Assembly (NCBI GenBank): GCA_025201805.1 | Contig: MU619297.1 | Coordinates: 1-55,298 of the forward strand | Origin: Parasitella parasitica NRRL 2501 | Taxonomy: Eukaryota > Fungi > Mucoromycota | Reading direction: 5' to 3' | Length of the DNA: 55,298 bases | Shown: positions 26,819-54,137 of the stretch, in pieces | Numbering within the stretch: the stretch's first letter is position 1 | Layout: each line of letters begins with the position of its first letter | Notes under the pieces: generated by a model | Database searches by the model: none | The model's input: the letters and a program-made list of their open reading frames with translations, nothing else | Told to the model about the DNA's origin: nothing | Translations under genes and position numbers: made by a program

Positions 26819-27662
26819 GCTTTTATTTCTGCAACCTGAACAACTTGGAAGTTTAACATATTACTCATGAGGTCTTGAACAAACAACTAATTGTAAAATT
26901 AAGTTTGAAAATGAAAATCCGAAAGTTGACAATGGTGTCTACATTATTCAATGTTGGGTTATTTTAGTAGCATGTTTCATCTCCCTTGATCACAATAAGG
27001 GTAGTTTTTTTTGGCGAGATTTACACTTGGCATCCACCACTGTTCAGGCTGAATTAATGATTTTGTCGTTCGTTTTTCACCTTTAAATACTGACCACATT
27101 TGTACTGTTTAAGAACTCCTATCATATTGGATTTTGTTCCAGGTAAAATCAAAAAACTAAAAAACCATGGATACATTATTCGCAATGCTAATTTGATCAC
27201 CAGCAAGCCTCTGATGAGATTAACGAGGGATCCAATACTCAGAGAATATACTTTGATCTATTCATTGCTTTAGTTGCTTTTTACATCCTTGACGGCATAA
27301 ATCTCCAATTTTAATAACTCAAATTTGGAAATCGAAAAATTGTTTGGAAAGTTTTCATTTTATCTGGTAAAACATAGCCAATTAGAGAGCGTTTAGCTAG
27401 GATGACATAGCAACAAATATTTTAGGGCGTTTTTTCAGTCCTTTTAATTTTGTGTTGTTTTGTTTTTTTGTTCATTCACGACTTTGGTTAAAATACATGG
27501 ATGATCGTTAAGGTATATTTCTTGCGTAATTTGTCAAATTGGTTGTATTTTTATTGATACTGTAAATAACAGGATTTACAACGTAGATATAATAGCTAGG
27601 ATTGGAACCAAAAAGTGCAAAGATAAGTATTTTACAAGATGAACCATGAAGAAAGATCCCTT

Positions 27663-27937
27663 GCCTTCGCAGGTTGTAAGCCTATGGCCGTGTTTCATTT
27701 GGGCCTCTCACTGTACGGGTTGTTTCTTTTTGCTGCCTACCTTCTTGGGGCATATTTTTTATGCCTGGGAGGAATGCACCGGCTTCTTGAACAAGAGATG
27801 TCCCCATTCGCCTTCGCAGGTTGTAAGCCTATGGCCGTGTTTCATTTGGGCCTCTCACTGTACGGGCTGTCTCTTTTTGCTGCCTACCTTCTTGGGGCAT
27901 ATTTTTTATGCCTGGGAGGAATGCAACGGCTTCTTGA
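27663..27937 (+). repeat. Tandem direct repeat, 2 x 128 bp (period 147, 3 differences); candidate structured RNA
   Basis: Copies at 27663-27790 and 27810-27937; differences at 27720/27867, 27724/27871, 27779/27926. Confidence 0.95.
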
Positions 27938-28290
27938 GCGAATGGCTTAACTTCATGATTTCATACTTTTTTTTTTTTTTTTTTGAATCTTACATATTTT
28001 TTTTTAAAAAAAAAAAGAAACTATAGGCCGTCAGTAATTGATGTAAATGTCTGTTAGCCATGAACCAAAAATTGCCCGTTTGCTACATGTGGTAACCGCT
28101 TAGGTGTACCAAGACACTTACCAAATTGAGATCCATGGCCTTGCCTTAATAATTATTACCATTCAAGTATCAAGTCCTTTGCTAACTGCATTCAATATCT
28201 ATAACTGAACAACCATATTATATATCTATCACCGAATCGTAAAAGTATAAATACTCATCAATTTTATCAAATAAGAAATCATGTATACAT

Positions 28291-29658
28291 TACAACAGTT
28301 GCCGAAGCGAAGGTAGAAGAAGTGGTACAGGCTTTCCAGCCACGCTTTATTTTCAGTATATAACTAAGAATCTTGTCTCATAATCCCCTCTTTCTCCAGA
28401 TCTTTCAAGCTATGCTAATAATTCAATTTTTTTTTTTTGGGAGGGAATTGAGACGATAAAGTGAAATAAGATGAGAGAGAAATTAAGAGAGCCATCTCTT
28501 ATACCAGGGTTGGGATTGTACCACTTCTTCTACCTTCGCTTCGGCAACTGTTGTATTGTCTGTTGTGCCTAAGACAATCCTTGTTGCCTTCGCTTCGGTC
28601 TCCGAAGTGATACGATTGTCAGCTTGCGAAAAAATTGAATTCTGAATGATGGTACTAGAGGATTGTTGATACGCAGGTTTGTAGTAGTACTTCTCAAATG
28701 TATTCAAATGAGCGGCCCAGTTAGCATGATCCTTGACTTGGGCAATAGAAATACCCTTTTGAACTGCTTTTGTGCTAGCTGCAGCCCTGATGGAGTGCGG
28801 TTTGTATTCGTTGCTGATGCCTGCCTCGGCCATATGGTAGCTGACCCAGGCGGCCACTGTTGCTGGTTTTATGCTGGATGGTGGACCTTGCTGAGGGTCG
28901 TTGAGGTACGTCAACAATAGAGTATGGTCTTCTGGTAAGGTAGTACGGAAAGGCAGAGATATTTGTAGAAATAGAGACATGCAACGGACCAGACACAACT
29001 CCTCCCCCGGCGTACTAAGTAGACCCAACCTTATACTCTTGTGCTGTGCTTCTTTTGGCTGCCTGATTTGAAGTATGAGGCCAAGCAAAGAGCCATCCTC
29101 CGAGCGGCGCAAGACGGTGTCCCGGAACTGGAGAGTACCAATGTCACTTCGAGGACGCCACATCGTGTGGAGGCAGAGAAGCAATACAAGTTTTTGTTGA
29201 AGGTCGTATAGGGAGAGACGGGAGGAAGGGGGCAAGGCGGTAACAATATAGTTCGCCAGAATGTCTGTATCCCATGTTTCAAGAGTTGCTAAACTGGATA
29301 CTTTGGTGGTCTTTTGTCTCTTCGCCCTGAAGAATGCCATTATGTCCGGGTCTTCAGCCAAAGGAGGGTGATGGGGGTACAGGACGGAGAGTACTGAAGC
29401 AATTGCGGACCTATACCCATTAAGCGTCGACGGTGCCAAGTGAGAGTAACATGTTATAAATTCGAGAACTTGCTTCGTACCATATAAAAAAGGATCAAGC
29501 TTGCGTTCCTTGCACCATTCTTCATATTTGTCCCACCCAAGGTCATACATCTTGTTGGTGGAGTCGCGATTGTAGTGTGCATTAGCTGCAAGATCGACAG
29601 CATCACGTTGGTATTTTAACATTAGACATCCGTTCTTCTCTTTTTCTGTTGTTGTCAC
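28291..29658 (-). mobile_element. DIRS-type tyrosine-recombinase retrotransposon, 3' part (YR ORF, ICR, right terminus)
   Basis: YR ORF plus a perfect 39-bp inverted match between 28291-28329 and 28517-28555, the latter overlapping the end of the YR ORF as DIRS ICRs do. No gag/RT visible. Confidence 0.85.
28483..29658 (-). CDS. Tyrosine recombinase of a DIRS element
   Basis: SAM-like region (STLNGYRSAIASV) and catalytic residues R (MWRPRSD), HxxR (PHSIR), W (ANW), Y (TFEKYYYKP). The extreme N-terminus may not belong to the element. Confidence 0.9.
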   Translation of the reverse strand: MTTTEKEKNGCLMLKYQRDAVDLAANAHYNRDSTNKMYDLGWDKYEEWCKERKLDPFLYGTKQVLEFITCYSHLAPSTLNGYRSAIASVLSVLYPHHPPLAEDPDIMAFFRAKRQKTTKVSSLATLETWDTDILANYIVTALPPSSRLSLYDLQQKLVLLLCLHTMWRPRSDIGTLQFRDTVLRRSEDGSLLGLILQIRQPKEAQHKSIRLGLLSTPGEELCLVRCMSLFLQISLPFRTTLPEDHTLLLTYLNDPQQGPPSSIKPATVAAWVSYHMAEAGISNEYKPHSIRAAASTKAVQKGISIAQVKDHANWAAHLNTFEKYYYKPAYQQSSSTIIQNSIFSQADNRITSETEAKATRIVLGTTDNTTVAEAKVEEVVQSQPWYKRWLS

Positions 29659-29697
29659 TGGAATTAAACAGCGTATTTTTAAGAATTATCGAATAGG

Positions 29698-31184
29698 CAC
29701 ACTTTTAAAAATAATATTTGCACACTTGTAAGAATAGTTTTTGCACACTTTCTTAATTAATTCCACACAGTTTTTAAAAAGACATTACTTGAATGAACTT
29801 TCAGTTNNNNNNNNNNNNNNNNNNNNNNNNNNNNNNNNNNNNNNNNNNNNNNNNNNNNNNNNNNNNNNNNNNNNNNNNNNNNNNNNNNNNNNNNNNNNNN
29901 NNNNNNNNNNNNNNNNNNNNNNNNNNNNNNNNNNNNNNNNNNNNNNNNNNNNNNNNNNNNNNNNNNNNNNNNNNNNNNNNNNNNNNNNNNNNNNNNNNNN
30001 NNNNNNNNNNNNNNNNNNNNNNNNNNNNNNNNNNNNNNNNNNNNNNNNNNNNNNNNNNNNNNNNNNNNNNNNNNNNNNNNNNNNNNNNNNNCATATGACT
30101 GGCTGAAGAAGGATCAGAAAGATATTATGGAAAGAATCAATCCTGATAATCACATTGAAACCGAAAACTTACCACCTAAAAAGAAAGCCGGTCGACCAGT
30201 ATTGTTGGGTGAAGAACATAAGAAGCATTTAGAAGATAACTTTATCGACCATCCTTCGGCAACATTAGATCAAGCAATGGAAAGCCTTACTACCCAATTT
30301 TCTGACTTGAAGGTGTCAAAAACCACTGTTTACAATTTCATGACACAAAACTGCGCCTTGTCATTCAAAAAGGCTCATTTTCATTCACAAGAAAGAAATT
30401 CGCCTGCAAGCATTCAAAGAAAATTTGAATGGGTAGTTCGATGGGCTGAGACCGATATGGATTTTAACAGCAACTGTGTGTTTATCGACGAATCTGCGTT
30501 TCATATCAATTTGAAAAGGGCAATGGCTTGGTCAAAAAAGGGAGCTCGAGCTGAAGTAGTCCAACCTTTAACCAGAGCCAAGACGACAACTATATTGGGA
30601 GCCATTTCCCCCTTCGGTGTCATCAATGTCAAAGTTAGTACCATATGCTGAAGTTTCTAAGAAACGAAAAGTGACAGGAGGTAGTAAGGCTCAGAAGACT
30701 GCTGGAACTTTACTGGGCATTATATGAATTTTATTTCGAGCACCTTAGATGTCATGGATCGTCACGAAGAATTCAAAGGGAATTATCTTATCATGGATAA
30801 TGCCCCTATCCATACATCAGATAGCATCAGAAGATTCATTGAGAGCCGTGGGTACGGATGTGTTTATCTTCCCCCTTATTCGCCTGAGCTCAATCCAATT
30901 GAGCAATTCTGGTTAGTTGTAAAGAGTAAATTAAAAAAGGAAAAGCTCTTGCAGAGCGAAACTCTTAATATGAGAATCGCTGAAGCTTGTCATAATGTTC
31001 TCTTTAGCGACTTGGAAAGATTCTGTCGTTATTCTGCTTTAAAATTTGAAACCTGCTTCAATAAAGAACCTCTATAATATAATTTGCACACAGTGTGCAA
31101 AAAATAAAATAAAAAGCGTGGAGAAAGTAATAAAATATGAGCAATTTTTTCCTCAGCTTGTGCGAATAATTTCTGAAAATAGTG
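29698..31184 (+). mobile_element. Tc1/IS630 DD34E DNA transposon with frameshifted transposase (visible 30092-31077), spanning an assembly gap
   Basis: CVFIDESAF, LIMDNAPIH, LPPYSPELNPIE with 34 residues between D and E. Right end ...TGTGCGAATAATTTCTGAAAATAGTG followed by TA loosely inverts 29698-29730. Boundaries tentative. Confidence 0.85.
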
Positions 31185-31389
31185 TATCAGTCTTTTTAAG
31201 GTTTAGAGAAAAAAAAGTTCAAGTAAATCCAACTATTTCATTCTGTTCTCTCATTTAATTATACGTCTTTTCAAAAATCATAGCATATTCAGTCAAATGA
31301 CCATCTCTATTTTTATAACCTCACATTATCATTTTATGTAACATCTGTTGAGTCAAGAAAGCATATCCAGTATCAAGGAAAGAATATAA

Positions 31390-31412
31390 CAGTTGGACTC
31401 GTTATAACGGAC
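31390..31412 (+). mobile_element. Possible solo pogo/Tigger-like TIR remnant
   Basis: CAGTTGGACTCGTTATAACGGAC resembles CAGT..AC(C)TCG.TATAACG-type termini; no partner TIR seen. Confidence 0.3.
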
Positions 31413-33575
31413 AGGTTGATGAACAAAAATGTGTTCGGTGTAGCGAGCTATCCACCATTCAGAATTTGATATTTTACAGCACAAATGCCTGGAACCTGGA
31501 ATCTACCAGAAGCTTATTATTAAGCTTGACTTTAATTAGTAAAATTGCCCTCAACCTCAATCCTAACCTCTACTTTACTTTCTATTTTACATGCGTAGCA
31601 TTAGAATCGCAAAAAAAAAGGAACTCTTGAGTTGACATTAAACATTATTATAGGCATGATAATAGAGCTTCTCTGTCACTAGCAATTAGCAACTTATGAA
31701 TTTTTTACAATAAATAGGGCTTTGCCATGTACTAGAATTGAAATTGACGTGATATCATCTCCAGATAGATATTTTTTACAGCTTAAAAGCAAGAACTTTA
31801 GCTTCGCGAGCCATTTTTTGATTAATTTTCATTACCAAAAGTGCCCTGAAAACACGAAAAATAGTATCCATTGGTAAAAAACTATATTATATATGATTTT
31901 GGTGCAATTTGGGTATGATTTTTTTTTCGGTGCAAAATCACGGATTTTTTCAATTTTTTCCTTGTATCCACGCATCCAAAATCATTGATTATGCATTATT
32001 CTCGATTTTGACCTCAAAAATGCAACTTTTTACTATGACATATATTGGAGGAAAATGATCGTAAAAGACCATTCCTTGATCTGAAAGACTGGAAATGCGC
32101 TTTGATTAAACAAAATATTGAATTTTCCCTCTTGATTTGTTTTGAGGTTTTTTCAACATAATTCCTTCCATAAGCATACGAGAGTTATGAAATAATACCA
32201 TCGTGTAGAGCGTCCAAAAATACAGCTATTATCATAGACTGACAGCCGTGGTATGCATAATATCAGAAGATGATATCTTGCCTTAAAAAAGTAATTTTGT
32301 TTTCTAATTGTACAAATGGAGTTTCTGAAAGAATGTTTACTTCCTGATTTTGGACGCGTTTAATCTCCGCTATCAAAGAAAAATGGTGTTTTTTTGACGA
32401 AAGCATTAGCTTTAGGAAGCCATAGCTTACCCAATTCAAGAGAAGAACAATAGAAATTTATATTATTTAAATAGTGTACTTCTTGGCTTCCTAATGGTAG
32501 TACTTGCATGTCTCCACCTGGCCTGAAGATCTCACGCTTCGATTTTGAAAATACTTTTTCGAAAAAAAGTCAAAAAAGTCGTTACCTCCATCTGATGTCA
32601 GCTTAAAAAGTACAAAAAATTGGTCTAAGCTATGCAAATATGTAACCAAAAGGCGCCTTATAGCCTATTGCATTACTTTGCATTACTCTTTTTTGTGTTT
32701 GAGGCTGCTAAACATTGCTTTCTTACAGTTTTTGTCTTTTTTCTGACATTAACACACTGAGGTTCGCATAGACCAAAAAAAAAAAAAAAATCAAGCGCCT
32801 AAAACCTGCGATGGCTTTGCAAAGACACACACTTTTAACCCATTCCAATATGATAGAAAAGATGGCACAGGTTTGACTAGCTGCTCTACTGTGCAACTGG
32901 ATATAGAGAACCCAGCTTGGCATATGTCTGGCAAGACCTTCTACACTAGAATACGCCAAATCAGCTGAAGGTATAAGGAAATGCCAAAGAAAATGAAACA
33001 ATCTGCCACCAGGATAACACACTCATTCATAAAAAATGATCTGTATAATTCCAAGGACATAAATGTATTTATCTTCAACCTTGCTCTCCGTTCCTGAATC
33101 CAATTGACGGTTTTTGACCCAAAGTCAACAGACACATTTACACCCAGAATCACAGATGTTTGTCAATAGACATTCATAACCTTTTCTAAAGACTACCTTG
33201 GACTTAAAGAAACGACACAATCTCTTTGTATTTTAACTATGAATGAAACAAAGCAATAAATCTTTTTCTCTAAATATTGAAATCCCCACTTGAAATTTTT
33301 TCAGGGAGACATTTCTCTACTCTCAGAAACTTGTTAACTTTTATCAGAGATAAAAGGGTTTTTTTTACCAGAAACCCTAATATATATTATCACAATCACC
33401 ATGGCCTTTATCATTTGCTTGAACTTTTTTTTCCAGAAACTGCTAAATAACAGTAGCATGCAGGAAACAACATGCATAGGGCAGAAAACGACTGCCTATC
33501 GTGACTATATGTTTCATGGACGCGCAACAAAAGCAAAGCATAATACAAACTCGCTGTACTTTACTGCTTCGTATC

Positions 33576-34498
33576 ATGTCATTTGTACCTGTTAAGGGCT
33601 TTAATAGCAACTCGTTCAAAAATTCTACTCTCATATTGGTAAGATAATGAAACAGTTTTGATTCAATTCCTCTAATCACTAGCCATAAAGCCTACTGTCT
33701 CGATCGGCAATGTGGCTCAGTTGGCATCTGATTTAATAATCCATACATTTAAGCTTGAGCGCGTTGGCTTTCTTGACGATGATTCAGTCTTGCCAGTGTC
33801 TGGTGTACGTGAGGACATCAATTTACCGGGCTCCACTGTTCCTATTGAAGGTAAATATTTGCAAAAGGTTGCGACGGCGCAACGTATTCTCATAATACTT
33901 TGATGCTACAGTGTACCAATCAAAAGATCAGCTTTGGACATGTATACAACAGCGTTCACCTACAATCAAAGGAAAAAGACAGGAGTTTTTGGATAATATG
34001 ACTAGATTTGGAGCACAGTTCCAAAAGGTTGTTATTCTGACCTCAATGGATGCGTCTCGTCGTTTAGATTCGCAGATTCAAGGTGAGCCGTTTAGGGTGT
34101 ATGGTGAGCATGGTTTGGTCATCCGTGCTGTTACTATGGGCATCCCAGTGCTGGAGAATTTTGAGCTCGACACAAGCCAGACTGATGATGAACATCATGT
34201 ACATTTACCTGGCTCTGGTTTAGCAAGGCATCTGTACCAGCAACTTGACCAGAAAGATATTGATACCACATTGCTTCTAATGTTTGCGCTGGAAGGAGGT
34301 ACATTTTCTCAACATAAAAGTATAAAACTCAACGCTCATCCATGTACATCTTTAGACAACGTCCAAGACGGCATTGAATTTGCTAGATGTGTCAACACAT
34401 TACTCAAAATTCAAACGACAGGACTCTCGCAATGGTCACCGCCAAAGAGCTGGAAGTTTTTATTTGGCACACCTTACAATGCAGAATTGTATCAATAA
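33576..34498 (+). CDS. PSMG2: Proteasome assembly chaperone 2 (PAC2)
   Basis: Spliced: NSTLIL|PTVSIGNVAQLASDLII...ERVG...IQQRSP...LTSMDA...EG|DNVQDG...WSPPKSWKFLFG...LYQ*. Confidence 0.9.
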
Positions 34499-34500
34499 AT

Positions 34501-35633
34501 TTAAAATGTTTCGTCATCGTATTGTTCTTCTTCTTCGCCTTCAGGTGGTACCTCAAATCCTTCTTCCGTTCTATAAAGAATAGCCTGAATTTCTTTGATA
34601 CAATCAACCTCTGCCGTCTCTTCTTGCGATGCTTCTAATTGCTCCTGAACCAAAATCTCTATTTCCCTCAACTTTCCAAAATAAAAATCCCTTTCTTTTT
34701 CCAATCCATCTACCGTTACTTTGAGTTCAGTAACTTGAGCTTTCAAATCATCGATTTTAGCGGCATCTGCTGACCCGCTCCCTCCTCCAACTTTAGCTGA
34801 TGGTTGTCTACCTGTTGGTGTGCGATTGGGGGGAGTTCGGGCTATAAAGATTGTAAATACACGGGTATATGAATTTAGTTTTTTTTTTTTTACCTGCAGA
34901 GCTGTTATTATTTATCGCTTTTCGTGCCATACTTGCAGCCCCGCCGGCAGCAGCATTAGAACGTCCACCGCCTTTTCTGCGTTGGGCTGCATTATACTCT
35001 CCTCCTGGAAAATTTTGCTCCCAGTATCGCTTCACCCATTGCATGAATTCAAGATTATCTTGAAATTTGCATTTCATCAGCTTGTCAACTGGAATAATCT
35101 ACGAGTTAAAAGGCATTTGCTTTAGAGAAGGCCAAAGAGTTGAAAAGCGTAGACTTTTTACCTTGTCGATTCTATTTTTAAGGGGTCAGGACACAAGGGA
35201 ATGATTGATGAAAACCCCCCCCCCAACAACAACAACAACACAAACGCGCGTTATTTTTCATGTCGACTTACTTGTGTTTATCAAAAGTGTGTTGAAGTAC
35301 CTTGAAGTTAGCTACATACTCATATTCAAGTTTAGTGTCAAACTTGACTTTTGACATGCTAACATCGTCTATCGAAAACATTTTTTTTTTTTTAATAATC
35401 TTGATTTCTTTGTGGGGATTACACGGCAAACAACTTACTAAACACAGAATCCATTATTTGACAATAGGCGGCACCTGTATTATTATATCGCGGTAAGCCA
35501 TTGTTTGCACTGTACATTCTCTTGATGAAATTCTCCCAAAGTTCTTACCTGTGCCTGCTTGCTCTACCTTGGTATAATTAAGATCTAAAAAACTGTTGAG
35601 CCAAGCCAGTAATTCGGTTCTAGATTCTCCCAT
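34501..35633 (-). CDS. BIM1: EB1-family microtubule plus-end tracking protein (Bim1/Mal3)
   Basis: MGESRTELLAWLN...GAAYCQIMDS...KLMKCKFQDNLEFMQW (CH domain), LEKERDFYFGKLREIE (EBH), acidic DETF tail; includes a 10-nt micro-exon. Confidence 0.95.
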
Positions 35634-35907
35634 AATGTATCGGCTTCTGTGTTGATAAGTGTTTAAAAACAAAGAGAAGGGTGAATAACCAGATCTCTTC
35701 TAGAGAAGTTAATAAATAGAGGGCGATCAAGGAATAGCAATGTTACAGAACAATGTGATGTCATTCGCCCGATTTTCAATAGCAGTTGCGACAATATGGA
35801 GTGTAGTGCAACCTCTCAATAGGCGCATCATTGACCTGGATCAAGTATGGTACTACTTCTCCAATAAGCCACCTGGTGACCATCTTGAGGTAAACTTGGC
35901 CATCAAA

Positions 35908-35938
<31 letters not shown>

Positions 35939-35973
35939 NNNNNNNNNNNNNNNTAATAAATCAAACATTTAAC

Positions 35974-36815
35974 ATGAAGGTTATACAAAAAGGCAACAAG
36001 GGAAGTAGTCATTCCAACCCCAAGACTGCCAAAAATCAAGGACCAACGCAAAGTACTCCCCTCAGTGCTGGCAAGATCAAAAAGAAAATCAGAGACACTC
36101 AACGCACAATTAGTAAGGTAACGCAAAAAATATATGTGCAGTGGCGAAATAGATGGACTGATTTGCCGGGAAAACAGAAAGATTTGCCTGCAGATGTCAT
36201 TACAGAAGCCAAAAGACGCTTGCGTGTTTTGGAGTTTGATTTGGGAGAGAAGATAGTCGATGAACATGAGCGAGAAAACTCTACAAAATATCACAAGGTG
36301 AAGCATTTCGGTAAGACCAAGGGTTTGATTGTGAAGGATTGCACACGACTCATTGCAGACTAGAGCGTAAAAAGGTCCAGAGAAAATTAAAGCAATCCAA
36401 AAAAGCCGTGGAGGAGGGAAAGCCAGAGGATGAACTCAAGATGGCTCAACTTGAAGAAAAAGCAAAAGAGTGGCAGATTAAATTGACGTATGTTCTAAAT
36501 TATCCTAAAACATTGCCATATATATCGCTTTTCCCCAAAGAGAATGAAAACGATAGCAAGAGTCTAGCTAGAAAAACAAGATTACTCGGGGAAATTGAGC
36601 AAGCTTTGGCTGATGGAGACCAAGATTTGACATTATTAAAGAAGCGTTACCGTGATTCATACAAAGAAAAGCTGATTCAAAGAAAACTCATTCAGCCTGT
36701 CGCACCTGTGGATATTGAGGCAATGGATATAGAAAAGAAAAACCAAGATGCCAATGACAGTAGCAGTGACAGTGACAGCGACAACAACCAAGACGATTTC
36801 TTTGAAAAAGCATAA
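35974..36815 (+). CDS. EFG1: rRNA-processing protein Efg1 (3 exons)
   Basis: KIKKKIRDTQR...LPADV..EAKRRLRVLE...KYHKVKHF|ERKKVQRKLKQ...YVLNYPKTLPYISLF...DDFFE. Confidence 0.88.
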
Positions 36816-42541: not shown

Positions 42542-44648
42542 ATGACTTCCGTAGCAGCGAGTAGTCCATTGACACCATCTGCAAGTACTTCGTTGTTATC
42601 CCGGAGACGTTGGCTACGAGGCCCTAGAATTGTACCTCTGAAAATCACCACTGCTGCTGCTCTATGCCAACAAGATACAACCTCGGTTACCAGCTCAACA
42701 ACTGCTATCGGATCACCGTCATCTGTAAAACTGCTATTTCCCTCACTCTCCATGTTCAACTTACCATCAGCAGCTATCACCCTACCCTCAGCAGTAGCCA
42801 AAGAATCAATGCCACCGCCACAGTTTGCAGTGAATCACACTAAACGACATCGTATCATAAAAAGGCTCAAGACTCGAAAACGCTTACAGAAGGCATACCC
42901 GTCCGCTTTCGAGACATATTTGTTTGACGATGCCTTGCCTGGCTTACCTAATCATGGTATACGGCCTGTGCGTTTACTCCTGGAGCGACTGCAAGCGTGG
43001 CACATGCTTGCTAAACGTTTATTACGACATTTTGAGTTGTTGGCTTCGGTCGAGCATCGAGTGTCCAAAACATACCGCGCACTGGACAGAGTGCCTATAT
43101 TTTCAGCCCCCAAGAAGCACCTGAGACGTATCGCTACCCACAAGAGTCGTCGCAAATTTTACAGAGATGAACGTTTACTCAAAATTCACTTTGCCTTTCA
43201 GGGCGGTATTCGAGGCGTGTGTGATGCATGGCAACATTACCACAACGATGCAGCTAAAGACCACGCTGAATTTGCTACTTTCCTGCGCAATGAAGCTATA
43301 CCGACCTTGTCCAACATCAAGCGAGAACTCAAATGGATGATCAAATCGATTAAAGACGATGATCGTTTATCACTGCGCGCACTAACATCGCTTAAAAGAG
43401 AAGCAGCGAAGCGACTGAAGCGACTAGACCGACAATTGGTGTTCTTTGATGAACATCCGTATCACGGCTATACCAAAAAAGATCCTTGGTTAATGAATGC
43501 GGGTAAGGTTAGCGATTTATATCGATATTTTCATCTAACATGTGCAGTGCGCCAATACCGTAGCTGTCGTCAAGCAAATGGTCAAAGTGTATCGGCAAGA
43601 AAACAAAATTCACGAAACCGTACTGAGGTTACAGCGAGAAACATTAATATCAGAGGAGCAGTTGGTAGAGGAGTTCAGACGTCTTTGTCAGCACATTTAC
43701 AATATGAGAGATCAGTCTACGTTGGGCATTGACAGCGGGCTGCAGAATATTATGACAGCATTCGACACTGTGCAAATGGACAGCGACTGGATCAACTTTA
43801 GTAAACTTAACGAGGCACATTTGATATCTGAGCAGGCAGCTTTCCGCCATCCTGACCACTTGCAGTATCCAAACCACTCCCACACGCTGCTACAGCCTAT
43901 ATTTGCTGCACGCATGGAGCGTAAATCAATTGTGCTTCATCACTGGCATGAGTACATCTACGTCTTGACACATGCGGGTTTCTTGCACGAGTATCGCAAT
44001 GCTTCAAACTACCCTGCCCGACCTGACGTTTCTATTTACGTGCCTCACTATAAGGTGTCGTCGCTCTCAACAAACTTGCATCATAATCTCGTCTTCCAGT
44101 TACAGCCTCACAAAGCTTCCAGAAATATGCTGAAAAACAATGGCTGCAGTACATTGCCGAAAGCGTTGAGAACATCGAAAACTAGGTGGGGTTGCAATGA
44201 TCGGTGGACTTGGACATTACGTGCAAAGTCAGCACAGGACATGGAGACTTGGATACAGCATTTGACTGAAAGTTCTGAAAGATACCGCCCTACTGCTGTC
44301 AATATATTGCCCCGCTCTCATCCTGAGATCGTCGTTAGTCCCGCTGCTGAAGAAACAGAAGCGGAGGAGCAAGAGGAAACAATATCAGCACCATCAGAAT
44401 CTGAATTGGTGGTGGACGATGAACTACAATCTCCTCCTGCAACTGAACAAGAGGACCTCACCGCCGATACAAACGTAGATGAACCACCTAAAGCCGAAAC
44501 AGCTTCAGAAGAGCTGCCCACTGAAGAAACGCCAAAAGAAGAGGTGGCTGCTCCTGCTGCAGAAGAGCAAACCATATGCGATGCTTTCGTTACTGGAAAC
44601 GAGGAAAAAATACAGGAGACACAGGCAGACAACGCTGTTATTGAATAA
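42542..44648 (+). CDS. Slm1/Slm2-like BAR-PH domain protein (2 exons)
   Basis: LLLERLQAW...DPWLMN helical region, PH domain (MERKSIVLHHWHEYIYVLTHAGFLHEY...WTLRAKSAQDMETW), acidic tail; intron 43503-43563. Confidence 0.75.
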
Positions 44649-44701
44649 AAATCTATATAGTTTATTACATCTATTTACAAAATTGCTTCAAGTAACAAGC
44701 G

Positions 44702-45198
44702 CTAACTACTGTTTTTGGCCAGACTGATTAAATGCGCTGATGAAGAGACAATATCAAGAGCACAGTATTTGTTTGCAATCAGAAATTGATGGTTCAGCAT
44801 GCTTGACCACACGGTAGTTAGTTCACTAAACAAAGTATTCAGTTATTTTGCTGCATACTGCATATGGCATTGAGTGAATACCTCTGCTTTACTTTGATAA
44901 TGCCTTCATTTCGGTACTGGTTCCAATCCAAAACGTCAACATAACAAGAAGCACCCACTTGTCCAAAAATAGACTGCAATGCTTGCTGAATACTCATTCG
45001 AAAAGACACCTCTGTGATCTCAACGTCTAGTTCCTCATCAGACCATCTATATCAAATGACTTTAGATGGATATTACTTTAACTCTGCTGCCTCTTTTGCT
45101 CTCTGTCTTTACATTTTAACTTTAAGATATTGCCATTCTTGAATAGGCTTCAAGTTTTTGAACCAAGGCTTGGCGTTGGACGTATTTGCAGCTGACAT
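44702..45198 (-). CDS. RNase P/MRP subunit of the Pop8/Rpp14 (Pop5-fold) family, 3 exons; absent from the ORF track
   Basis: Spliced: MSAANTSNAKPWFKNLKPIQEWQYLKVKIWSDEELDVEITEVSFRMSIQQALQSIFGQVGASCYVDVLDWNQYRNEGIIKVKQSELTTVWSSMLNHQFLIANKYCALDIVSSSAHLISLAKNSS*; I..AL..FG.VG...VDVL and SSSxxLxSL match the family. Confidence 0.82.
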
Positions 45199-45208
45199 GG
45201 ATAAAGCG

Positions 45209-45225
45209 ATATATATATATATATA

Positions 45226-45292
<67 letters not shown>
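45209..45292. repeat. (TA)n microsatellite followed by a poly(A) tract of about 64 nt
   Basis: Directly visible immediately upstream of the POP8-like ATG. Confidence 0.9.
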
Positions 45293-45295
<3 letters not shown>

Positions 45296-45955
45296 GCAGC
45301 ATCAACGCTTGATGCTTCTAGTCACATATGCTTGACTGTAAGGAAAAGTTACACCAACACTGTTTTGGAGGAGTGCAATGATGAGCCAAGGCTGCACTGC
45401 CACTTAATATACTTGCTTTATGTTTTGACAAGGAGCTTGTCTAAGCAAGATTGAAAAACAAAGAGCCTAGTAACTATCAATCTGACGCTTAGGGATCGTA
45501 ATTCAAATGTAAAATGGCCTTGACGAAACTGTCTTTAACATTTTGTTCTTTATATACAGCTGATTGAATGTATGGACTTGTTGGAGTTCTGTAGCTATGA
45601 TCTTTCAGGACTGAGGGCTGACATGACCAGATTAATCTGTCAAGGCTGTTGAGGGGTTACGCAGAGCAAGGCATCGCAATGTTTGTTTACCTCGTTTAAA
45701 TGAGATGTCGGGGAGTTCCAAATACTTTTTGATCCTTTCGAGGTGATGCATTGTGTAGGACTACAGATGTGTAGTTCCTCATCAAGTGATTTTCGCTTTT
45801 CGATGCATCGCAAATACACTTTTTGACGTTAGATGTTGGTGCTGAGCAAGTTTCAACTACCGAAGCCCTTCCTCCTGTTCGTCATCGAGATCGTTCTTCT
45901 TCTTTCCCCTTTACTTGCTCTTTTCATTTTATATATTTCTCCATATATACACTAG

Positions 45956-46756
45956 ATGGAGATAAACTTCATTTCGATTTACGACAATTCGGCAAAGGCA
46001 AAGTATCTATTTGTATCTGAAAGCGTAACCGATGTTTTGGGTTACCTGCCAGAAGAATTGGTGGGCGAATCTGGCTACAACGTAACACATCCTGATGAAA
46101 GGCAGGCTCTTGGAATGATCCACTCAGCTAATGTGCAAACCGAGCGCATGTCGAGCGTAATATCGTATAGAGCAAGACACAAGAACGGTCATTACGTATC
46201 GTGCGACGTTGTAATCCATTATTGCTACAATGTGTTTATTTGTACAAACTTTGCATTGGTATCAAGCGATTGCGTCAAGCACAACATGCGAGCAAACACA
46301 GCAGATGAGGTGTTTGTGATACAACTAGACGGCTCGATTCAACTCGCGGGCGTATGGAATGGCTCACAGAAAAGAATGAAAAAGACTCTCACCAAAAAAT
46401 ATCCTTGGGATGTCAATAATAACGTCTTGACTAAACATGAGCCTAGATTTTCCATATTCATCAATCGGTATACAAAAGAATCATTGATTGTATTCGCCAC
46501 GCAAATGTGCGAATCCATGGTTGGAATGAACCAAGAGCACTGTATTGGACAGTCATTATACGAATACATAGCGCCTCAAGATAAAGAAAACGTCTTCAAA
46601 TCGATAGAAATGTCAAAATCGACTGATATCATCAACCGACTACGATTCAATTGGCTTCGGCAAGATACGCAAGAATTGATACCCCTTGAGGCTGTAGTAA
46701 GCTGCACAAACGACGGCTTGGTTTTTGTAGCGCGCGCAAGATATCCAACCATTTAG
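45956..46756 (+). CDS. Stand-alone tandem PAS-domain protein
   Basis: PAS-A: YLFVSESVTDVLGYLPEELVGESGYNVTHPDE; PAS-B: IVFATQMCESMVGMNQEHCIGQSLYEYIAPQD...CTNDGLVFV. No output domain. Confidence 0.85.
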   Translation: MEINFISIYDNSAKAKYLFVSESVTDVLGYLPEELVGESGYNVTHPDERQALGMIHSANVQTERMSSVISYRARHKNGHYVSCDVVIHYCYNVFICTNFALVSSDCVKHNMRANTADEVFVIQLDGSIQLAGVWNGSQKRMKKTLTKKYPWDVNNNVLTKHEPRFSIFINRYTKESLIVFATQMCESMVGMNQEHCIGQSLYEYIAPQDKENVFKSIEMSKSTDIINRLRFNWLRQDTQELIPLEAVVSCTNDGLVFVARARYPTI

Positions 46757-47027
46757 TCTGCCTTATAATATTCCCCCCCCCCCAAATAAACATTTCTCTT
46801 CCATATTTTGGAAACTCTTTAATCGCACATGTAACAGTCTCACTGAAGCTTGATATATTAAGGAAGGGGGGGGGGGAAAGAACACCTAATGCCTTTTACG
46901 GGTTGAACGTCGCTTAAAAAAAAAATCATGCTAGAATTTGTATACATGTAACATAATTTTATTTGAACAATGAGGGAAGGAGGTGCGAGTTTGTGTATAT
47001 GTGTGATGATGAGGCGAATAGCTTAGC

Positions 47028-49340
47028 TTAGTCCAAATCATCGTATGATGCTGCTGCTCTTTTTCTTCGTTCTGAACTCTTTTTGCTTCTCTTGGCTTTC
47101 ACTTTCTTGTGGCCTGCCTCAAAAGCCATTGCTTCACGGTGATCTCTACCAAGAATATCGTAATCCTTTACTTTGTAAATTCTGACAATCCAGTTTTCCG
47201 AAGTGAAAGCTTCATCCAATACTGACAATTCAGGTCCTTTCATTGGAAGTGGTTGATTACGTACACGATCGTAGGGTTGACGTCCACCAAACACTTCGTT
47301 GAAACGATAATAACTCATCTTGTACATCAGTGAATCCTTCATCGCTTGAGACGCCTGGTCATCCACTCGATATTCACCTTGAGCAGTAAAGAAATCCGAT
47401 TCCTTGATTTTATCGGGCCAAATACCCTGAGCAATACGGATCATCCAAAGAAATTTGTTGATATCGTCGCCAGAATAGCCCAAAAGACCACCGAAAATGA
47501 CCAAAACGTAGTCGACATCATGCTTCTTCATGATTTCATATGAATCAGCTTCGTTGGTGGACATGGCACGGCCCACAGTAGCAATATGAGTGTTGTTCCA
47601 TGTATTGTTGTCGACAAGAGTAGTGCGGTTAGAGAAGCCAGCAATTTGATAACCATAATCCCACCATGACATGATTTTGGCATCTTCGTCCGTGTTCTTG
47701 CGCAGCCAGTAGTATGCTTCTCTGAAATCGTCGATAATACGTTGGGAACCATCTGGATTGCGGGAAGCGAGTACAACAGAGGGAGAAGAGTAAGCATTTG
47801 AAGTGACCCAAGTACAGTGCCAGACAAACATAAAGAGGAAAAAGACAAATGTGCTAACAATAATGATGCGATTATCATTACCAATGATTCCAGACATCTT
47901 GCTTTCTTTCTTTTCTTTCTTGGTGGGAGATTTCTTCTTCTTTTGCGCTTCAGCGTGGGTGACGGCAGAAGCCTCAGTGCTGGAGAAATCAAGGTAAGTA
48001 TCAAGCAGCGTAGAAATTGCCATACCGCCGCAAATGCAAACAATGGGAGTTAGGGTCAGCATTAAACGGACCATGACACCAGCAAAGTAGGAGGCAAAGA
48101 TGCTGTAGACAATGACAAAGACATGCTCATCGCGCAATGCTTGGAAGCACAAGTAAACACCAACAGGGAAGACAAAAATAAGCATCTGTAAATCGAAAAA
48201 GAACATGGGCCATGCAGTGGGCTGATGTTCAGAGACAGACGCAATGATGGGAATGTGGATTTTGGCATAGCCCGTATCCCAGAGAGAGTAGAAGCGGCCA
48301 GTCCAAGGAGCAATGTAGCCGCCCAGAGTCAGGGCTACTAGAGCAGCAAGGCCCAAGACAAATGTAACGCCTACAAATGCCTTGAGGAGGATTTGAAACT
48401 GCTTGGCTTGCAGATGGCTACGCATCAAATTAACAAAACCCATGATCTGACAGAGACCAAATACACCCAATGCAGCCATGTGCTCTGATGTGCGAGTGGG
48501 CTGGAAACCGACAAAAGGGATTTGCATTGACATCAATGTACCCAAAATGTAAAATGTGGAGTAGGATACATAAATGCGGTTCGAGAAACGACCCATTAGC
48601 ATCAAAACAAACACATGGAGCGGTATGATATTGATAATAAAGACATACCCGCCCCAAGCGGCAACCATGTAAAAGTAGAAGAAGGCTGCAGCTGATGCCC
48701 AAAGAGCAGAACCCAACTTGAGAGCCTTGATCCAAAGGTAGAATGTAAACATCAACAGGAAGATAGCAATAGCTTCATTGTCGTAGGAGCCGGCAACAGA
48801 GCGAGAGATGTAGCCTGGAGCAATTCCCATAAAGACAGCAGCCAGCAAGCCTGCAGAGCTATCTTTCAATTCCTTTGTCAACAAATAAGTCGCAAAAGCA
48901 GTTAAGCCAGAGAACATTGGCGCTAAAAGGACGCAAATGTTGCGGATGTCTACTGGAAAATGAAAGTAGTGAAGTATGTTGTGAATGACAGCTGCTGTAA
49001 CCATCAGCCCGGGATAAATAGTGCCTCCTACAACGCGTCCAAGTGGATACCATGAACGGTCATCAAACCAGTTCCAAAATTCATAAAAGCCATTTGTCAC
49101 CAACATGCGAGTAGCACGATAGTTGAACCTAACATAATGTACAAACCGAGTTTTCGTTAATTGCATGTCATTAACAAAGCCTGCTGCTGCCTCTATCCAT
49201 TACCAAGGGTCAAATTCGTGAATGATAGATTCATATCGAACAATACTGAAGAGACGTGACGAGAATGCTACAACGGCAATTAAGCCGAGAATGGCTCTTT
49301 TCAAAAGTATCTTTTGGCTGCTGACATCCAGCTTGGCCAT
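47028..49340 (-). CDS. STT3: Oligosaccharyltransferase catalytic subunit (2 exons)
   Basis: [10 protein letters not shown]|[44 protein letters not shown]. Confidence 0.97.
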
Positions 49341-49967
49341 ATTATTGTATTTAAGGTATGTAATGTGTTGAATAAAGGAGAGAAAAAGCCTACCACACCA
49401 CAAAAAAATTAAATATTTAAACGCTTGGCTTTATTGAAATAGGTACATTTGAAGTGGTTAATTACAACCTATGAAATCGCATTAAATCAATCAACGCCGC
49501 ATGACGTGTAAAGCCATTTTACGTTTGATACTTGACACTCTACACGGCAAGGCAACTGATGTATTCAACTGAAGGAGAGATAGAGGTAGGATGCCAAGAT
49601 GATTTGCTCTGATGCATGCAGATCTATTACGAAAGGAGGATTACACACTATTTTCTAGAGTTTTCGAATTCAAACTTCAGCCAAATCAAGCACGTTCAGA
49701 TAATCCATTGCTCAGACATCTACCAAACAAACTCTATTTGAGGGAAAACTATCAGTGATGCTAGAAAACTAGATGGGTACAGTTGGATTCATGCTGGCTT
49801 CTTTGGTTCGATAGTAACATATATCATCATGATTACAACATCATGGTGACCGTATATTGAATTACGCGCCAGCCTGGTTTAAATAAGGGATCCTTAAAGG
49901 CTATTGAGGAGCCTTTTCTTTAATTAATTCATACAAAATAAAGAAGAAAAAAAAAAAAGAGTATAGC

Positions 49968-51184
49968 ATGAAACTCTTTCTCAGAGGCATACTGTTTTTG
50001 GCAGCTTTATTTTATGTGGTATGTTTAGCTACATTGTAAAAGACATGTAAAGAATGTTAATGTATCTACAGGTTCACGCTCAAGACAGCGTAGTCAAGGT
50101 GCTTGAAAACGAGATTAGACAAGAATTAAAACTGGCTGCAGAGGATGCTGAATTAGTACAGGAAAATGCTAGCAGCTGTAAGGAGAAGGGGTCTGACTAT
50201 CTTCAGTATTTGAAGGACTTGGTATCCGATGCCCGCAAAGAAATAAAGAGCAACAACAATCGCAGACCTTCAACCCAATATTCTATCTATGATGTTGCCT
50301 TTTCCGTTGCCCACTACCTTCCATCCTGGGTATTTCCTCGGTCGATCTGGAAAGAGGATCCTGTTACTCGTCGCAGACATATTGCCAAAGTCTTGCGTAC
50401 CTCCCCTCTCGTCACTCGCCCTCGAGCTACTGTCATTCGCGACACTGCCGCACTCTGGACCAAGACATCCTCCCATCTTCTGGAGCAAAACTACACTCTT
50501 TCAACTGAAGAGAATCTCGTCTCTCTTCTTCAGTCTGCCGAAGATTTCGTCACTGCTGCAACTGATCTGGAATTAATGGACTCCTTATTCTTGGCTACTG
50601 GTTATGCAACCCTGGATGACGCCGTTACTCACTTTTTGACCAACAATTTGGAAGAGTTCAATAAGATTACCAATTCAATCAACCATGATTTCAACGAAAT
50701 TGTAAGTTTATCAGGAGATTTGCGTTGTTCGCTGGAGAGTGTTCGTGATGATGCCCTTGAGCAATCCATGATGATCCGCCAAACTTTGTTTTCGGAGCAC
50801 ATTGAAAAGCGTCTTCGTCATCTCAGCTGGCATATTCGTACAGAATTGCAAAATCTGTCTCAAGAACTTCGTGAAGTTCCTGAAGAAGACAAGGATCATT
50901 CAACCAAGTTGTTAAGAAAACACACTGCAGACTCGCTTCGCACAGAGATCGGAACATTGGATGATATAAAGTCGATATTGTGGAAATCCAAATCATTTTA
51001 CAACCATGTTTGGCAGAACGCCCACAATGAGTTGATACAAAGCCCTGTTTCTCTTGATTATTGGATTGATGTGGTTGCCGAGGTAAAGGAAGCTGCCATC
51101 AATCTGGGGAAAACCCTTACCAACAAGCATCAACAAAAGAACCAACATCGCTCGAAATGCACCTGCGGTTATAACAAGAATTAA
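49968..51184 (+). CDS. Hypothetical secreted alpha-helical protein (2 exons)
   Basis: Exon 1 MKLFLRGILFLAALFYV spliced to VHAQDS... gives a signal peptide with a VHA|Q cleavage site; long open exon 2. Confidence 0.7.
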
Positions 51185-51599
51185 TCCAATATTTTAACTT
51201 GTAAATAAAAAAAGTTGTATTAACAGCTTATGCATAATTTTTGATTGATGCGAAAAGACATTGGATCTGTATCCGCCATACACACCTTGATATATTTACA
51301 AATCTTTCTTTTTGGTAGGGCAGGAGATCACTAACTTATTCTGTTGATTAATCTCTGAGAAAACTTTGTTAAATTTCGATGATAGTTACTATATTACGTA
51401 CCTCTTTGATTGCTTGGATACAGTTATTGAAAAATGTAAGCTTATAACAGGTCTCCTTTTTCTTTTATTGTATTGAAACGTTTGAAATATACTTCAAGTA
51501 AACATATACTTGCATTCAAAACAACAGCTTTTTTTTGAACAGCATCTATAAAGTATAAATAGCAGAATCTTTAATAAAGTAATCTCAAGTTTTCGTATC

Positions 51600-52656
51600 T
51601 CGTTAATTCAACGTTTTATTTTATTTTTGATCTTGCAGATTTCAACATGCTTCTTGAAATTTTATAAGGCATATTGCACATTTGGAATAATATGCTATAA
51701 TGAACAATACTAAATTTTGAAGAAACAACTTTGCAATGACATGTTATCATCAAATAAACAAAACGATATAATCAACTAAAACAGGGCTCTCATATGTCAT
51801 GGTCTTTTTTTACGAGTACTCTCTTTAGTTTATGTTCTCGTATGCTTCGTAATAAGAAGTATGACATTACTTATATGCCCGGAGAAATTGAATTGACTTC
51901 TATGACTGAATAACTAAGCAAGCAAGGATTACTTGACAATCGTTTCAAATACTATGCAGATGGCAAAGTAAGAATTAATGCTGACAAGCAAGAACTTTTG
52001 CTTCTTGAGGTTTCTTCTGCCCTGGGTCAAGCAACTCAAGACAAGATTGCCTTTGATCATACCAAAGCCATGTTTGGGCTTCTTGTCATGTTGAAGACTC
52101 TCGCCTGCAAATATGGTCACGGATCATTTGAATCTTTTAAAAAAATTAAATTTCACTTCATTCACGTTCATGGTAATAATAGCAATATTTTTTCGTTGCA
52201 TAGGTCAATAGCAACAAACTTAATTTTGGTTTAATAGGCCACGCAGTTAAACACTGGACAATGATGACTCCGGAACCTGGAGTTTATATCATGACAAAGG
52301 AGCAAAAGGCCACCATTCCTGTGAACATCAACAACATGGCTGATGATTTGATCTCCTATATTCGATTCCATTTGAACTCGACAGTAAGATAAGAGTTTCT
52401 AATTCATTTCAACTGTAATGGTCACTGACCAAGTTTTTTTTAGGAGTTATTGAGGGAGACCTTGGATAGCATCGAAGGACTTCAAAAAGAACACAGAAGT
52501 CAGCTGCAAAAAGTAACGATTAACAACGAACAGATATCTGCTGAGACTTTGTTATCAAGTGTAGTTAAACCAGTCATCATAAGGTTAAATGAAGGCAAAC
52601 ATTCCAAAGAAGTTGTGGATAGCCCCCAAAGTAGTTCAAGCAGTCCTCAAAGATAA
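51600..52656 (+). pseudogene. Pseudogene of a PD-(D/E)xK-like repetitive family
   Basis: GEIELTSMTE*LSKQG...YYADGKVRINADKQELLLLEVSS...DHTKAMFGLLVMLKTLA...FIHVHG|..LKHW; in-frame TAA; 5' boundary uncertain. Confidence 0.55.
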
Positions 52657-53557
52657 ACAGCTCATCTCCTTCTCAATTCAAATATCTTACATGTATTACG
52701 TTATTGCAGTTTACTATGTGTATTTTTTCATCATTATAATTACTAAATAGCTTATTTTTGTATATTTCTTTGCACCTATCTTAAAGTGTTGCATTGACGA
52801 TGCTAAATAATATTTTTATCATGATGTACTGGTAATGGCATGTCAAAGGAGTTTGTGTTGCGTTTAAAGCTCGAATAGGTGCATCTTCATTATGCAATGT
52901 ATCTATTCTGAGATAGACAAACAGGGAAAGCTGCAATTCATTTGTGATTGAGCAAATACCATCAAAAGAATTTAAACAATAGCAACTCAAGAGCTTGACA
53001 AAGTCTTCACTTTTCACTCTGACCGAAGAATACTCTTTTTTTTTTTTTTTTTTNNNNNNNNNNTATGAAACGAAGAAAATTCGTCAGTATCACGAGCTTC
53101 TCCTAACAAATGTGTAATCACATTTGCCAGAAAATGCACATAGGATCACAGTAATAATTTAATACCTCATTTTAGCAACTTCTTTAAGATTAGGGTCGTT
53201 CTTAAAGGGTTTATTGAGCATGTTTTCCGCTATAGAAAAATGAGACTTTTGTAGAAGGAACTGATCATGTGAAAGAAAATAATAGTTTATATAATGGTTA
53301 CTTTATTTCATAATAATCCAAACTAGTTATAAAACAGGTTGAAACAGCTTTGGCTATATATATGTTTATAAAAGTATCAAATACCCATCAAACTTTCCGA
53401 AAATGTATATGTGTATACCATTATTGTAATGTATGCAGCATATTTTGAAAGCATCCAAACAAAGTATTTACCAAGTATTTCTCTAGAAAAAAAAATCGTG
53501 AAAAGTTAGAATAAGCCCTCCTTTTGTTATTCCTTGTATTTGAGGAAAAAGACAGCT

Positions 53558-53738
53558 TCCCACTCGTAGCTGGGTGCCTAGTTAAGGACAAACTGCAGCC
53601 ACAAATCTCTCCGGCGTAGGGCAGGGTTCATCTGTGTCATTTTCCCACAATGGCAAGGCACTGCTCCCACTCGTAGCTGGGCGCCTAGTTAAGGACAAGC
53701 TGCAGCCACAAATTTCTCCGGCGTAGGGCAGGGTACAT
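53558..53738 (-). repeat. Tandem direct repeat, 2 x 74 bp (period 107, 4 differences); candidate structured RNA
   Basis: Copies at 53558-53631 and 53665-53738; GC-rich within AT-rich intergenic DNA. Confidence 0.95.
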
Positions 53739-54137
53739 ACGTACTTTACCATTGCGTTTTTCAAATACAAAAAAGTATCAAATCATAAAGCTACATAAAA
53801 AATAGCTTTTCAAGTCATATTTTACAGCATCTTGGCTATTGATTCATACTTATAAAAACGTAAAATAAGGACTTATCTTAAATCATTTGTCTTGTTTTTG
53901 CTGTTAATCAATAAGAATTGCTAGGATTGCACAGCAATAAGATGTTTCTTTTAGAGTAGGAATCAGGACCTGCTGAACAGAGACATACCCTAACATAAAG
54001 ATATTTAGTTTGGTTTAAAGAAAATAGAAGACGAATAAGTCCTTCAGCCCTAGTTTAAGTAAAATTAATGATAACATGTGTGTGAAATATTTTGTCTACT
54101 AGACAATTTTATTTGACGTAGTTGTCTGGTGCACTAG

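Follow-up and report, generated by a model that had tools for sequence, protein, structure and literature searches.

Two tandem-dimer loci of Parasitella parasitica suggest a family of structured RNA-type elements

Introduction

Several described systems resemble the elements reported here. An Alu-type dimeric SINE is made of two 7SL-derived folded monomers in tandem and is present in thousands of copies. The Parasitella parasitica family shares with such SINEs the near-identical folded modules set head to tail, each with its own stems, as well as dispersed and partly truncated copies. However, it has neither poly(A) nor target-site duplications, and its loci number roughly a dozen. Polycistronic snoRNA or miRNA precursors are similar in carrying multiple hairpin modules with basal stems and promoter-like sequence upstream, whereas the present family lacks conserved boxes and any model match and holds its fixed segment outside a duplex. 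In Y RNA and vault RNA, as here, the ends form a terminal stem, the interior is variable, a T run lies downstream, and multiple copies occur with pseudogene-like relics; in contrast to them, the family matches no Y or vault model, and type A contains internal runs of five to six T. Finally, the Fanzor omega-RNA, abundant in the same genome, is also a structured RNA associated with mariner-type transposons. To our knowledge, almost no lineage-specific structured RNAs have been catalogued in early-diverging fungi.

Two tandem dimers in one window

Both loci, A and B, lie in the window, i.e., the whole 55,298-nt stretch of contig MU619297.1 that was analysed. A sequence-only reading had described them as GC-rich islands, each consisting of two near-identical cores inside an outer stem. 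This description held: the GC content is 0.48 in A and 0.49 in B against 0.30–0.33 in the flanks, 125 of 128 core bases match between the two copies of A (97.5% identity), 70 of 74 match between the two 74-nt cores of B (95% identity, 107-nt spacing), and inverted repeats form an outer helix around each dimer. The parts of locus A are as follows.

27552..27558, + strand: the word TATTGAT, upstream of A, in a pattern with the 9-mer that is also found at the C46 paralogue and at B
27620..27628, + strand: GATA/TATA-like 9-mer AAGATAAGT, present at just one other place in the window
27642..27651, + strand: outer stem, 5′ arm, an inverted repeat with 27951-27960
27656..27663, + strand: closing stem of A1, 5′ arm, partner 27792-27799, 7/8 complementary
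27663-27937, + strand: tandem repeat, period 147 nt
27663..27790, + strand: A1 core, with hairpin I (~27669-27723), a U-rich hinge and hairpin II (~27733-27787)
27804..27811, + strand: closing stem of A2, 5′ arm, partner 27938-27945, 8/8 complementary
27810..27937, + strand: A2 core, with the two-hairpin fold of A1 at an offset of 147 nt
27951..27960, + strand: outer stem, 3′ arm, partner 27642-27651, used in the native-versus-swapped arm comparison
27967..27984, + strand: run of 18 T, 3′ of the outer stem, read from the sequence

The 9-mer ends 11 nt upstream of the dimer start at 27639 and 14 nt upstream of the outer-stem arm. Locus B reads on the opposite strand.

53907..53913, − strand: the word TATTGAT, upstream of B, in the pattern shared with A and C46
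53871..53879, − strand: 9-mer AAGATAAGT, the second of the two occurrences in the window
53761..53774, − strand: outer stem, 5′ arm, partner 53530-53543, with the inverted repeat at 53761-53770 and 53534-53543
53741..53756, − strand: closing stem of B1, 5′ arm, partner 53646-53661, p < 0.002 against shuffles, intact in the C8 dimer
53665..53738, − strand: B1 core, with an invariant 5′ block, helix P3 and an invariant 3′ block
53635..53645, − strand: closing stem of B2, 5′ arm, partner 53544-53554, p = 0.012, three double changes against C8 and none broken
53558..53631, − strand: B2 core, built as the B1 core
53530..53543, − strand: outer stem, 3′ arm, partner 53761-53774, used in the native-versus-swapped arm comparison
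53487..53495, − strand: run of nine T downstream, beyond the 3′ tail common to the C126 and C8 copies

T runs also lie downstream of the C8b, C46, C126 and C12 copies. The assembly gaps (29807-30091, 35939-35953 and 53054-53063) fall between A and B and none lies within either locus; they affect nothing here but the distance from A to B.

Relatives in the genome

Each type is dispersed in the P. parasitica genome.

A-type, five loci, three of them dimers: C61 (the window), C46, C42, C8 at 360 kb and C14
B-type, five full loci, two of them dimers: C61, C8 at 74.7 kb, C12, C2 and C126; in addition, two fragments, on C54 and C412

Within the dimers of A and C14, module identity is 97.5%, versus 58% between those two loci, and the B and C8 dimers are 41–48% identical, with linkers and closing stems homologous between dimers. 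Judged from these alignments, the modules of a dimer stay alike despite 41–58% identity between loci, a pattern of concerted evolution, presumably via gene conversion. A search for relatives of the A open reading frame in other species returned the C46 paralogue only, and an exact-product look-up gave no record. Metagenome and viral scans with an invariant B-type 18-mer yielded chance matches in GC-rich bacterial contigs, none of which was accompanied by the 3′ block.

The period of A, 147 nt, corresponds to 49 codons, and the dimer can be read through in two frames, raising the question of whether an open reading frame at 27639-27950 (103 aa) encodes a small repeat protein; NCBI holds a 99-aa hypothetical-protein model for the C46 copy. 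However, that model uses another start, and the frame changes after a 2-nt insertion. The C42 copy carries indels and stops in both frames, the C14 dimer has a period of 146 nt and no sense open reading frame, the period of B is 107 nt, and neither a Pfam match nor a homologue outside the species was found. Thus, a reading frame is not kept among the relatives, where loss of a start codon was also noted, and the protein reading of A is close to refuted.

Fold and covariation

The A-type sequences fit a fold with two hairpins per module, in which 91.8% of the alignment cells are paired across eight sequences, compared with 38–49% in slid controls, in an alignment that was itself fitted to the model; in the same eight sequences, both sides have changed at eight pairs. 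This co-varying fold displaces the small hairpin and three-way junction originally drawn for A. For B, a proposed GNRA loop is not kept in the C8 relatives. Helix P3 (7–10 bp) co-varies, and its arms fit their own partners best (rank 1 of 24). The tip of P3 is variable, being the same in both arms of one locus and different between loci.

The sequence-only reading had also claimed closing stems specific to each copy. Compared with shuffled flanks, this stands for B (p < 0.002 and 0.012), whereas A on its own gives no such support (p = 0.43 and 0.12). The closing stems of B can be aligned with those of the C8 dimer at 23 pairs, nine of which have changed without a single one being broken. The outer stems of six loci sum to −97 kcal/mol in their native pairing versus a mean of −48 kcal/mol with swapped arms (rank 1 of 720). 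In general, the paralogues show stems that co-vary and unpaired segments that are fixed, i.e., helices are kept by compensatory change, as in structured non-coding RNAs; because only one species is represented, all of this covariation derives from paralogues, some of which are recent duplicates. Fold energies lie modestly below those of shuffled sequences (z from −0.5 to −4.2).

Complementarity alone does not separate DNA from RNA, and recombinase-bearing transposons lie nearby, so a DNA-level element forming cruciforms or single-strand hairpins in recombination or replication has to be considered. However, the predicted preference for one strand is borne out at seven of the eight family loci, where G–U pairs give the stated strand the better fold, many wobble pairs in the helices would be mismatches on the opposite strand, and neighbouring transposons do not lie in a consistent orientation to the loci. 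A DNA-level role is therefore very improbable.

Relation between A and B

A core motif common to A and B had been proposed, with the absence of cross-detection between models named as grounds for abandoning it. Covariance models R1 and R2 each detected only their own type, nhmmer found no A–B match above shuffles, and pairwise A-type versus B-type alignments reached a best p of 0.02 among 35 comparisons. The motif is thus at chance level by covariance models, profile HMM and pairwise alignment, and the claim of a shared core and junction fails on its own terms. What the two types do share is layout, with dimers inside an outer stem in both, and flanking signals: the 9-mer AAGATAAGT is common to four of nine independent family loci (two A-type and two B-type; p ~0.001), and in the window it occurs at A and B only. 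The upstream element of the family differs from that of the genome's SRP RNA genes.

Comparison with known RNA classes

No Rfam 15 family matched at the gathering threshold anywhere in the window, and at E values up to 10 only scattered weak matches appeared, none recurring between loci. ARAGORN reported no tRNA in the window or at eight family loci, while tRNA-Ser(AGA) was found in controls. The suggestion of an undescribed repeated RNA-type family is supported in that no Rfam, tRNA or coding explanation applies and the stems co-vary among paralogues.

Over 23 nt, the A core agrees with the variable-arm/T-arm region of tRNA-Ser(AGA) at 19 positions, and this stretch includes a box-B-like word. 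The likeness was noticed post hoc and is weaker in the relatives at C14 and C8b; unlike tRNAs and tRNA-derived SINE heads, the A core has no cloverleaf and lacks a suitably spaced box A. A permuted or tandem tRNA origin of B was suggested by its block order (T-arm-like, 7-bp helix, D-loop-like) and its 84-nt unit, and was rejected, as B-type sequences compare with tRNA-Ser at chance, with no bulge-helix-bulge in the closing stems and no tRNA model match. Because B resembles the human Alu domain over 9 nt, the SRP RNA genes of this genome (C166 and C150) were located and compared, and they are unlike either core; SRP models score nowhere on the loci. Words in B resembling a U12 branch site and an Sm site are lost in relatives. 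For Y RNA, a TROVE/Ro60 gene was not detected in the genome. For the Fanzor omega-RNA, none of 49 Fanzor nuclease-domain matches adjoins a family locus except one by C46, which is an independent insertion with a tail unrelated in sequence to the modules.

In the B type, a 5′-side block of ~25 nt is invariant while the remaining hairpin varies, and the tandem hairpin modules, each with a basal stem of 8–16 bp, would lie on one putative transcript. These features could indicate a small-RNA precursor in which closing and outer stems serve as putative sites for RNase III-type enzymes (Dicer, Rnt1 or Mucorales R3B2), whose cuts would release modules or short RNAs, comparable to the processing of polycistronic clusters of snoRNAs or miRNAs. 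However, most of the invariant block lies outside helices, whereas a miRNA would sit in a duplex, and neither snoRNA nor miRNA models score here. An H/ACA RNA is defined by the order hairpin, H box, hairpin, ACA, the last of these 3 nt short of the end; in the hinge of A, ANANNA is not conserved, nor is ACA after hairpin 2 in either family. In most copies, the word beside the 5′ stems does not match a C box (RUGAUGA), and a D box (CUGA) is unconserved. Boxes of either class are thus missing at conserved places, and such a precursor appears decidedly unlikely.

Newly discovered ribozyme classes have likewise shown variable helices around fixed nucleotides of junctions and loops, tandem copies, and mobile elements nearby, and A and B might accordingly be read as pairs of putative self-cleaving ribozymes of an undescribed class, the first idea of the sequence-only reading. 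In agreement with the sequence-only reading, the hammerhead, HDV-like, twister, twister-sister, pistol, hatchet and hairpin models gave no match at E values up to 10. Hammerhead core words are absent at conserved positions, and no cleavage site is marked. Moreover, the fixed segments differ between the A and B types, so two new ribozyme classes would be needed. We regard ribozymes as highly unlikely. Of the functions named in the sequence-only reading (self-cleaving ribozyme, exonuclease-resistant element, retroelement module), none is favoured by any of the observations.

Mobile-element context

Transposon remnants had been noted close to both loci, and they are indeed there, ~520 bp from A and ~360 bp from B.

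28483-29658: tyrosine-recombinase open reading frame near A, ~520 bp away
54138-54554: Tc1-type HTH open reading frame near B, ~360 bp away

Tc1/mariner, Crypton or Helitron-like debris lies 0.4–2 kb from most loci, the copies are dispersed and of low identity, C126 is 5′-truncated, and C54 and C412 are partial. Together with the downstream T runs and the tRNA-Ser match, these observations are consistent with a non-autonomous, SINE-like retroposon, possibly derived from a tRNA-Ser gene, whose copies are old insertions and whose folded RNA would serve its own copying only. However, such a retroposon should differ in several respects from what is found. At nine of nine loci, the longest direct repeats in the flanks only reach the length expected from shuffling, giving no target-site duplications above chance; terminal inverted repeats and a poly(A) tail are absent, the tails ending in T runs; the promoter-like upstream word lies outside the folded body; and A and C46 are homologous through segmental duplication, not insertion. 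With so few loci, and a tRNA match found afterwards in a family where no copy is detected as tRNA by ARAGORN or Rfam, we consider a SINE-like origin, and with it a fold serving only its own copying, rather unlikely. A MITE or foldback transposon finds no counterpart in the family loci, as there are no conserved terminal inverted repeats and the paired flanks are the least conserved, copy-specific part.

Most loci lie amid transposon debris and several are decayed, which speaks against an RNA-gene reading and would also fit a mobile or dying repeat.

Proposed model and implications

A and B probably belong to a small superfamily of non-coding, strongly folded elements, seen to date in P. parasitica only, and the most plausible identity of its members, which we put at about even chances, is that of independent putative RNA genes. 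The family matches no described RNA family and is most likely undescribed and lineage-restricted.

The data show the family itself, its lack of coding capacity, the folds with their covariation, the concerted evolution and the common upstream word, whereas transcription, polymerase, processing and function are inferred. The unit consists of an AT-rich upstream region with the GATA/TATA-like 9-mer, a GC-rich body and a T-rich stretch downstream, the body being made of one or two hairpin modules within a terminal stem that joins both ends. The internal runs of five to six T in A speak against synthesis of the entire unit by RNA polymerase III. Selection probably favours the fold of a single strand, as suggested by matched substitutions in helices and fixed unpaired segments. 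These fixed, exposed segments may form the working surface, docking a protein or a complementary nucleic acid, in which case a single dimeric molecule would carry the same site twice. Terminal and closing stems may protect the ends or mark a precursor for cutting, and gene conversion would keep the two modules of a dimer alike. A more specific proposal, that the family represents small RNP RNAs, or catalytic RNAs, of a new class in which identical arms, kept alike by selection and not by gene conversion alone, act together and the P3 tip is a specificity element, seems unlikely to us; the same low expectation applies to the arms cooperating, e.g., in binding a homodimeric partner or a target in two copies.

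The family shows marks of selection on a fold, namely co-varying helices, fixed exposed segments, a promoter-like word and concerted tandem copies. If it is not transcribed, it would be an example of paralogue covariation alone mimicking an RNA gene. If it is transcribed, it would make a new Mucorales RNA or RNP accessible in a compact and testable form.

Tandem dimers and their relatives in the assembly

The sequence-only reading had described two GC-rich islands, each made of near-identical tandem cores, and this was confirmed by Tandem Repeats Finder and a repeat finder. Locus A carries two 128-nt cores on the plus strand at a spacing of 147 nt (identity 125/128), and locus B, which reads best on the minus strand, carries two 74-nt cores at a spacing of 107 nt (70/74); the GC contents are 0.48 and 0.49, respectively, vs. 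0.30–0.33 in the flanks. None of the three assembly gaps in the window (29.8, 35.9 and 53.05 kb) lies inside A or B, so only the quoted A-to-B distance is affected. A whole-assembly census by BLAST, pattern and covariance-model searches yielded two groups, A-type and B-type, and no relatives of either type were found in the metagenome or viral collections searched.

Members of the two groups (module, a core with its own closing stem; dimer, two modules inside an outer stem)
A-type, window (locus A): dimer
A-type, contig 46: dimer; segmental duplicate of the A region (94% over ~800 bp, dimer 99%)
A-type, contig 42: single module
A-type, contig 8 at 360 kb: single module
A-type, contig 14: dimer, 146-nt period
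B-type, window (locus B): dimer
B-type, contig 8 at 74.7 kb: dimer
B-type, contigs 12, 2 and 126: single module each
B-type, contigs 54 and 412: fragments

Identity between the modules of one dimer reaches 97.5% both at A and at the contig-14 locus, yet between these loci it is only 58%; for B and its contig-8 relative the figure is 41–48%. Linkers and closing stems are homologous among dimers of one type, so the dimer is old, and the cores of each dimer evolve in concert, homogenised within their own locus. Downstream of A, 28020–28268 (+) matches the contig-46 paralogue at 97% identity (upstream flank only ~89%) and holds brief echoes of the A module 5′ end, perhaps from a third module now decayed.

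Folds and covariation

The three-way junction drawn earlier for A was not borne out; the A-type consensus is instead a co-varying module in which a U-rich hinge links two hairpins. Over eight sequences, 91.8% of cells are paired and 8 pairs are changed on both sides, figures that lean toward the model because the alignment was fitted to it; sliding the partners lowers pairing to 38–49%. The seven B-type cores share invariant blocks of ~25 nt on the 5′ side and ~10 nt on the 3′ side, which are joined by a short helix, P1, and between which sits helix P3 (7–10 bp). The P3 arms vary by locus, yet each one's own partner fits best (rank 1 of 24 permutations). A small GNRA-capped hairpin proposed for the B core proved weak and is not retained in the contig-8 dimer. 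The closing stems of the B and contig-8 dimers are homologous, with 23 aligned pairs, 0 broken and 9 changed, 4 of those on both sides. The outer helix expected around each dimer is present in every dimer and in two single modules, the native arms summing to −97 kcal/mol vs. a swapped mean of −48 (best of 720 permutations). The anticipated strand preference also held, the sense strand out-folding its complement at 7/8 loci; fold energies are only modestly below those of shuffles. Besides a small structured RNA gene, a small-RNA precursor is among the main alternative readings of such loci.

Relationship between A and B

A and B do share the architecture first noticed, i.e., modules with their own closing stems enclosed by an outer stem. 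The proposed common core motif failed: the B-type covariance model does not detect A nor the A-type model B, the B profile scores A lower than shuffled decoys, and among 35 pairwise alignments the strongest reaches p = 0.02. Upstream of each dimer, and oriented as that dimer, lies the 9-mer AAGATAAGT, whose sole occurrences in the window are 27620 (+) and 53871 (−), with a second word, TATTGAT, upstream of it at both loci. Four independent loci, two of each type, carry the 9-mer upstream, a result reached by 1/1000 shuffles. The two types are probably related at the locus level, with cores diverged past detection.

Known RNA families, coding potential and candidate promoter signals

As the first reading had it, no known RNA family matches: Rfam gave nothing in the whole window at gathering scores and only scattered weak matches for A, B and three relatives at E up to 10, and ARAGORN found no tRNA. 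A new ribozyme is a further main alternative. Among stretches taken from assembly contigs, L168 (253–334) and L169 (206–287) carry tRNA-Ser(AGA) genes, and a 23-base piece of the A core agrees at 19 positions with their variable-arm/T-arm region; L167 holds a decayed look-alike uncalled by ARAGORN.

A 103-aa ORF spans A because 147 nt equals 49 codons. A protein gene was rejected, as this ORF lacks conservation among the contig-46, -42 and -14 relatives. The contig-46 paralogue has lost the start codon and gained a 2-nt insertion, so that its annotated 99-aa "hypothetical protein" starts elsewhere and switches frame; the contig-42 copy has stops and indels, and the more distant contig-14 dimer has no sense ORF.

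Internal T runs of five and six in A count against transcription of the complete unit by polymerase III. Two SRP RNA genes (L011, C166:53041–53335; L012, C150:47949–48243), scoring 127 and 123 bits with Metazoa_SRP, each carry a TATA-like box at about −30. They also have an upstream element in common at about −55, which together with the box makes a candidate promoter signature of small RNA genes in Parasitella parasitica; this upstream element differs from that of the family loci.

Genomic surroundings

Most family loci lie in transposon-rich intergenic DNA, with Tc1/mariner, Crypton and Helitron-like pieces 0.4–2 kb from most of them. Another main alternative is a decaying SINE-like repeat; the loci show neither target-site duplications nor terminal repeats, and their orientation relative to the transposon pieces is inconsistent. 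The many Fanzor elements of the genome show no link to the family loci.

Features of the window
23995–25957 (+): phospholipid methyltransferase (PEMT) domains in two ORFs, probably exons of one gene, upstream of A
28483–29658 (−): ORF of 391 aa, weakly matching phage integrase (tyrosine recombinase); probably what remains of a Crypton or DIRS-type element
30127–31077 (+): Tc1/mariner DDE_3 domain split across two ORFs, adjoining the 29807–30091 gap
31252–32800: ~1.4 kb repeat, 81–87% to contigs 2 and 46, close to family loci there as well
35913–35938: run of 26 T, abutting the gap at 35939
45229–45293: run of 65 A
54138–54861 (−): N-terminal HTH portion of a Tc1/mariner transposase, close to B

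The contig-126 B copy faces a full Crypton-type gene (NDC10_II and GCR1_C; L029:400–2383) in head-to-head orientation. Next to the A dimer of contig 46, a 2975-base N run (C46:129751–132725; L030 5552–8526) is followed by a Fanzor nuclease-domain match (C46:132749–132916), together a ~3.7 kb insertion missing at the window's paralogous site.

Interpretation

Helices that co-vary, exposed segments that stay fixed, an asymmetry between strands, a common upstream word and downstream T runs are the pattern expected of small structured RNA genes. The preferred reading, given about an even chance, is that the A- and B-type loci form a family of such genes; that they are transcribed and have a function is inferred.
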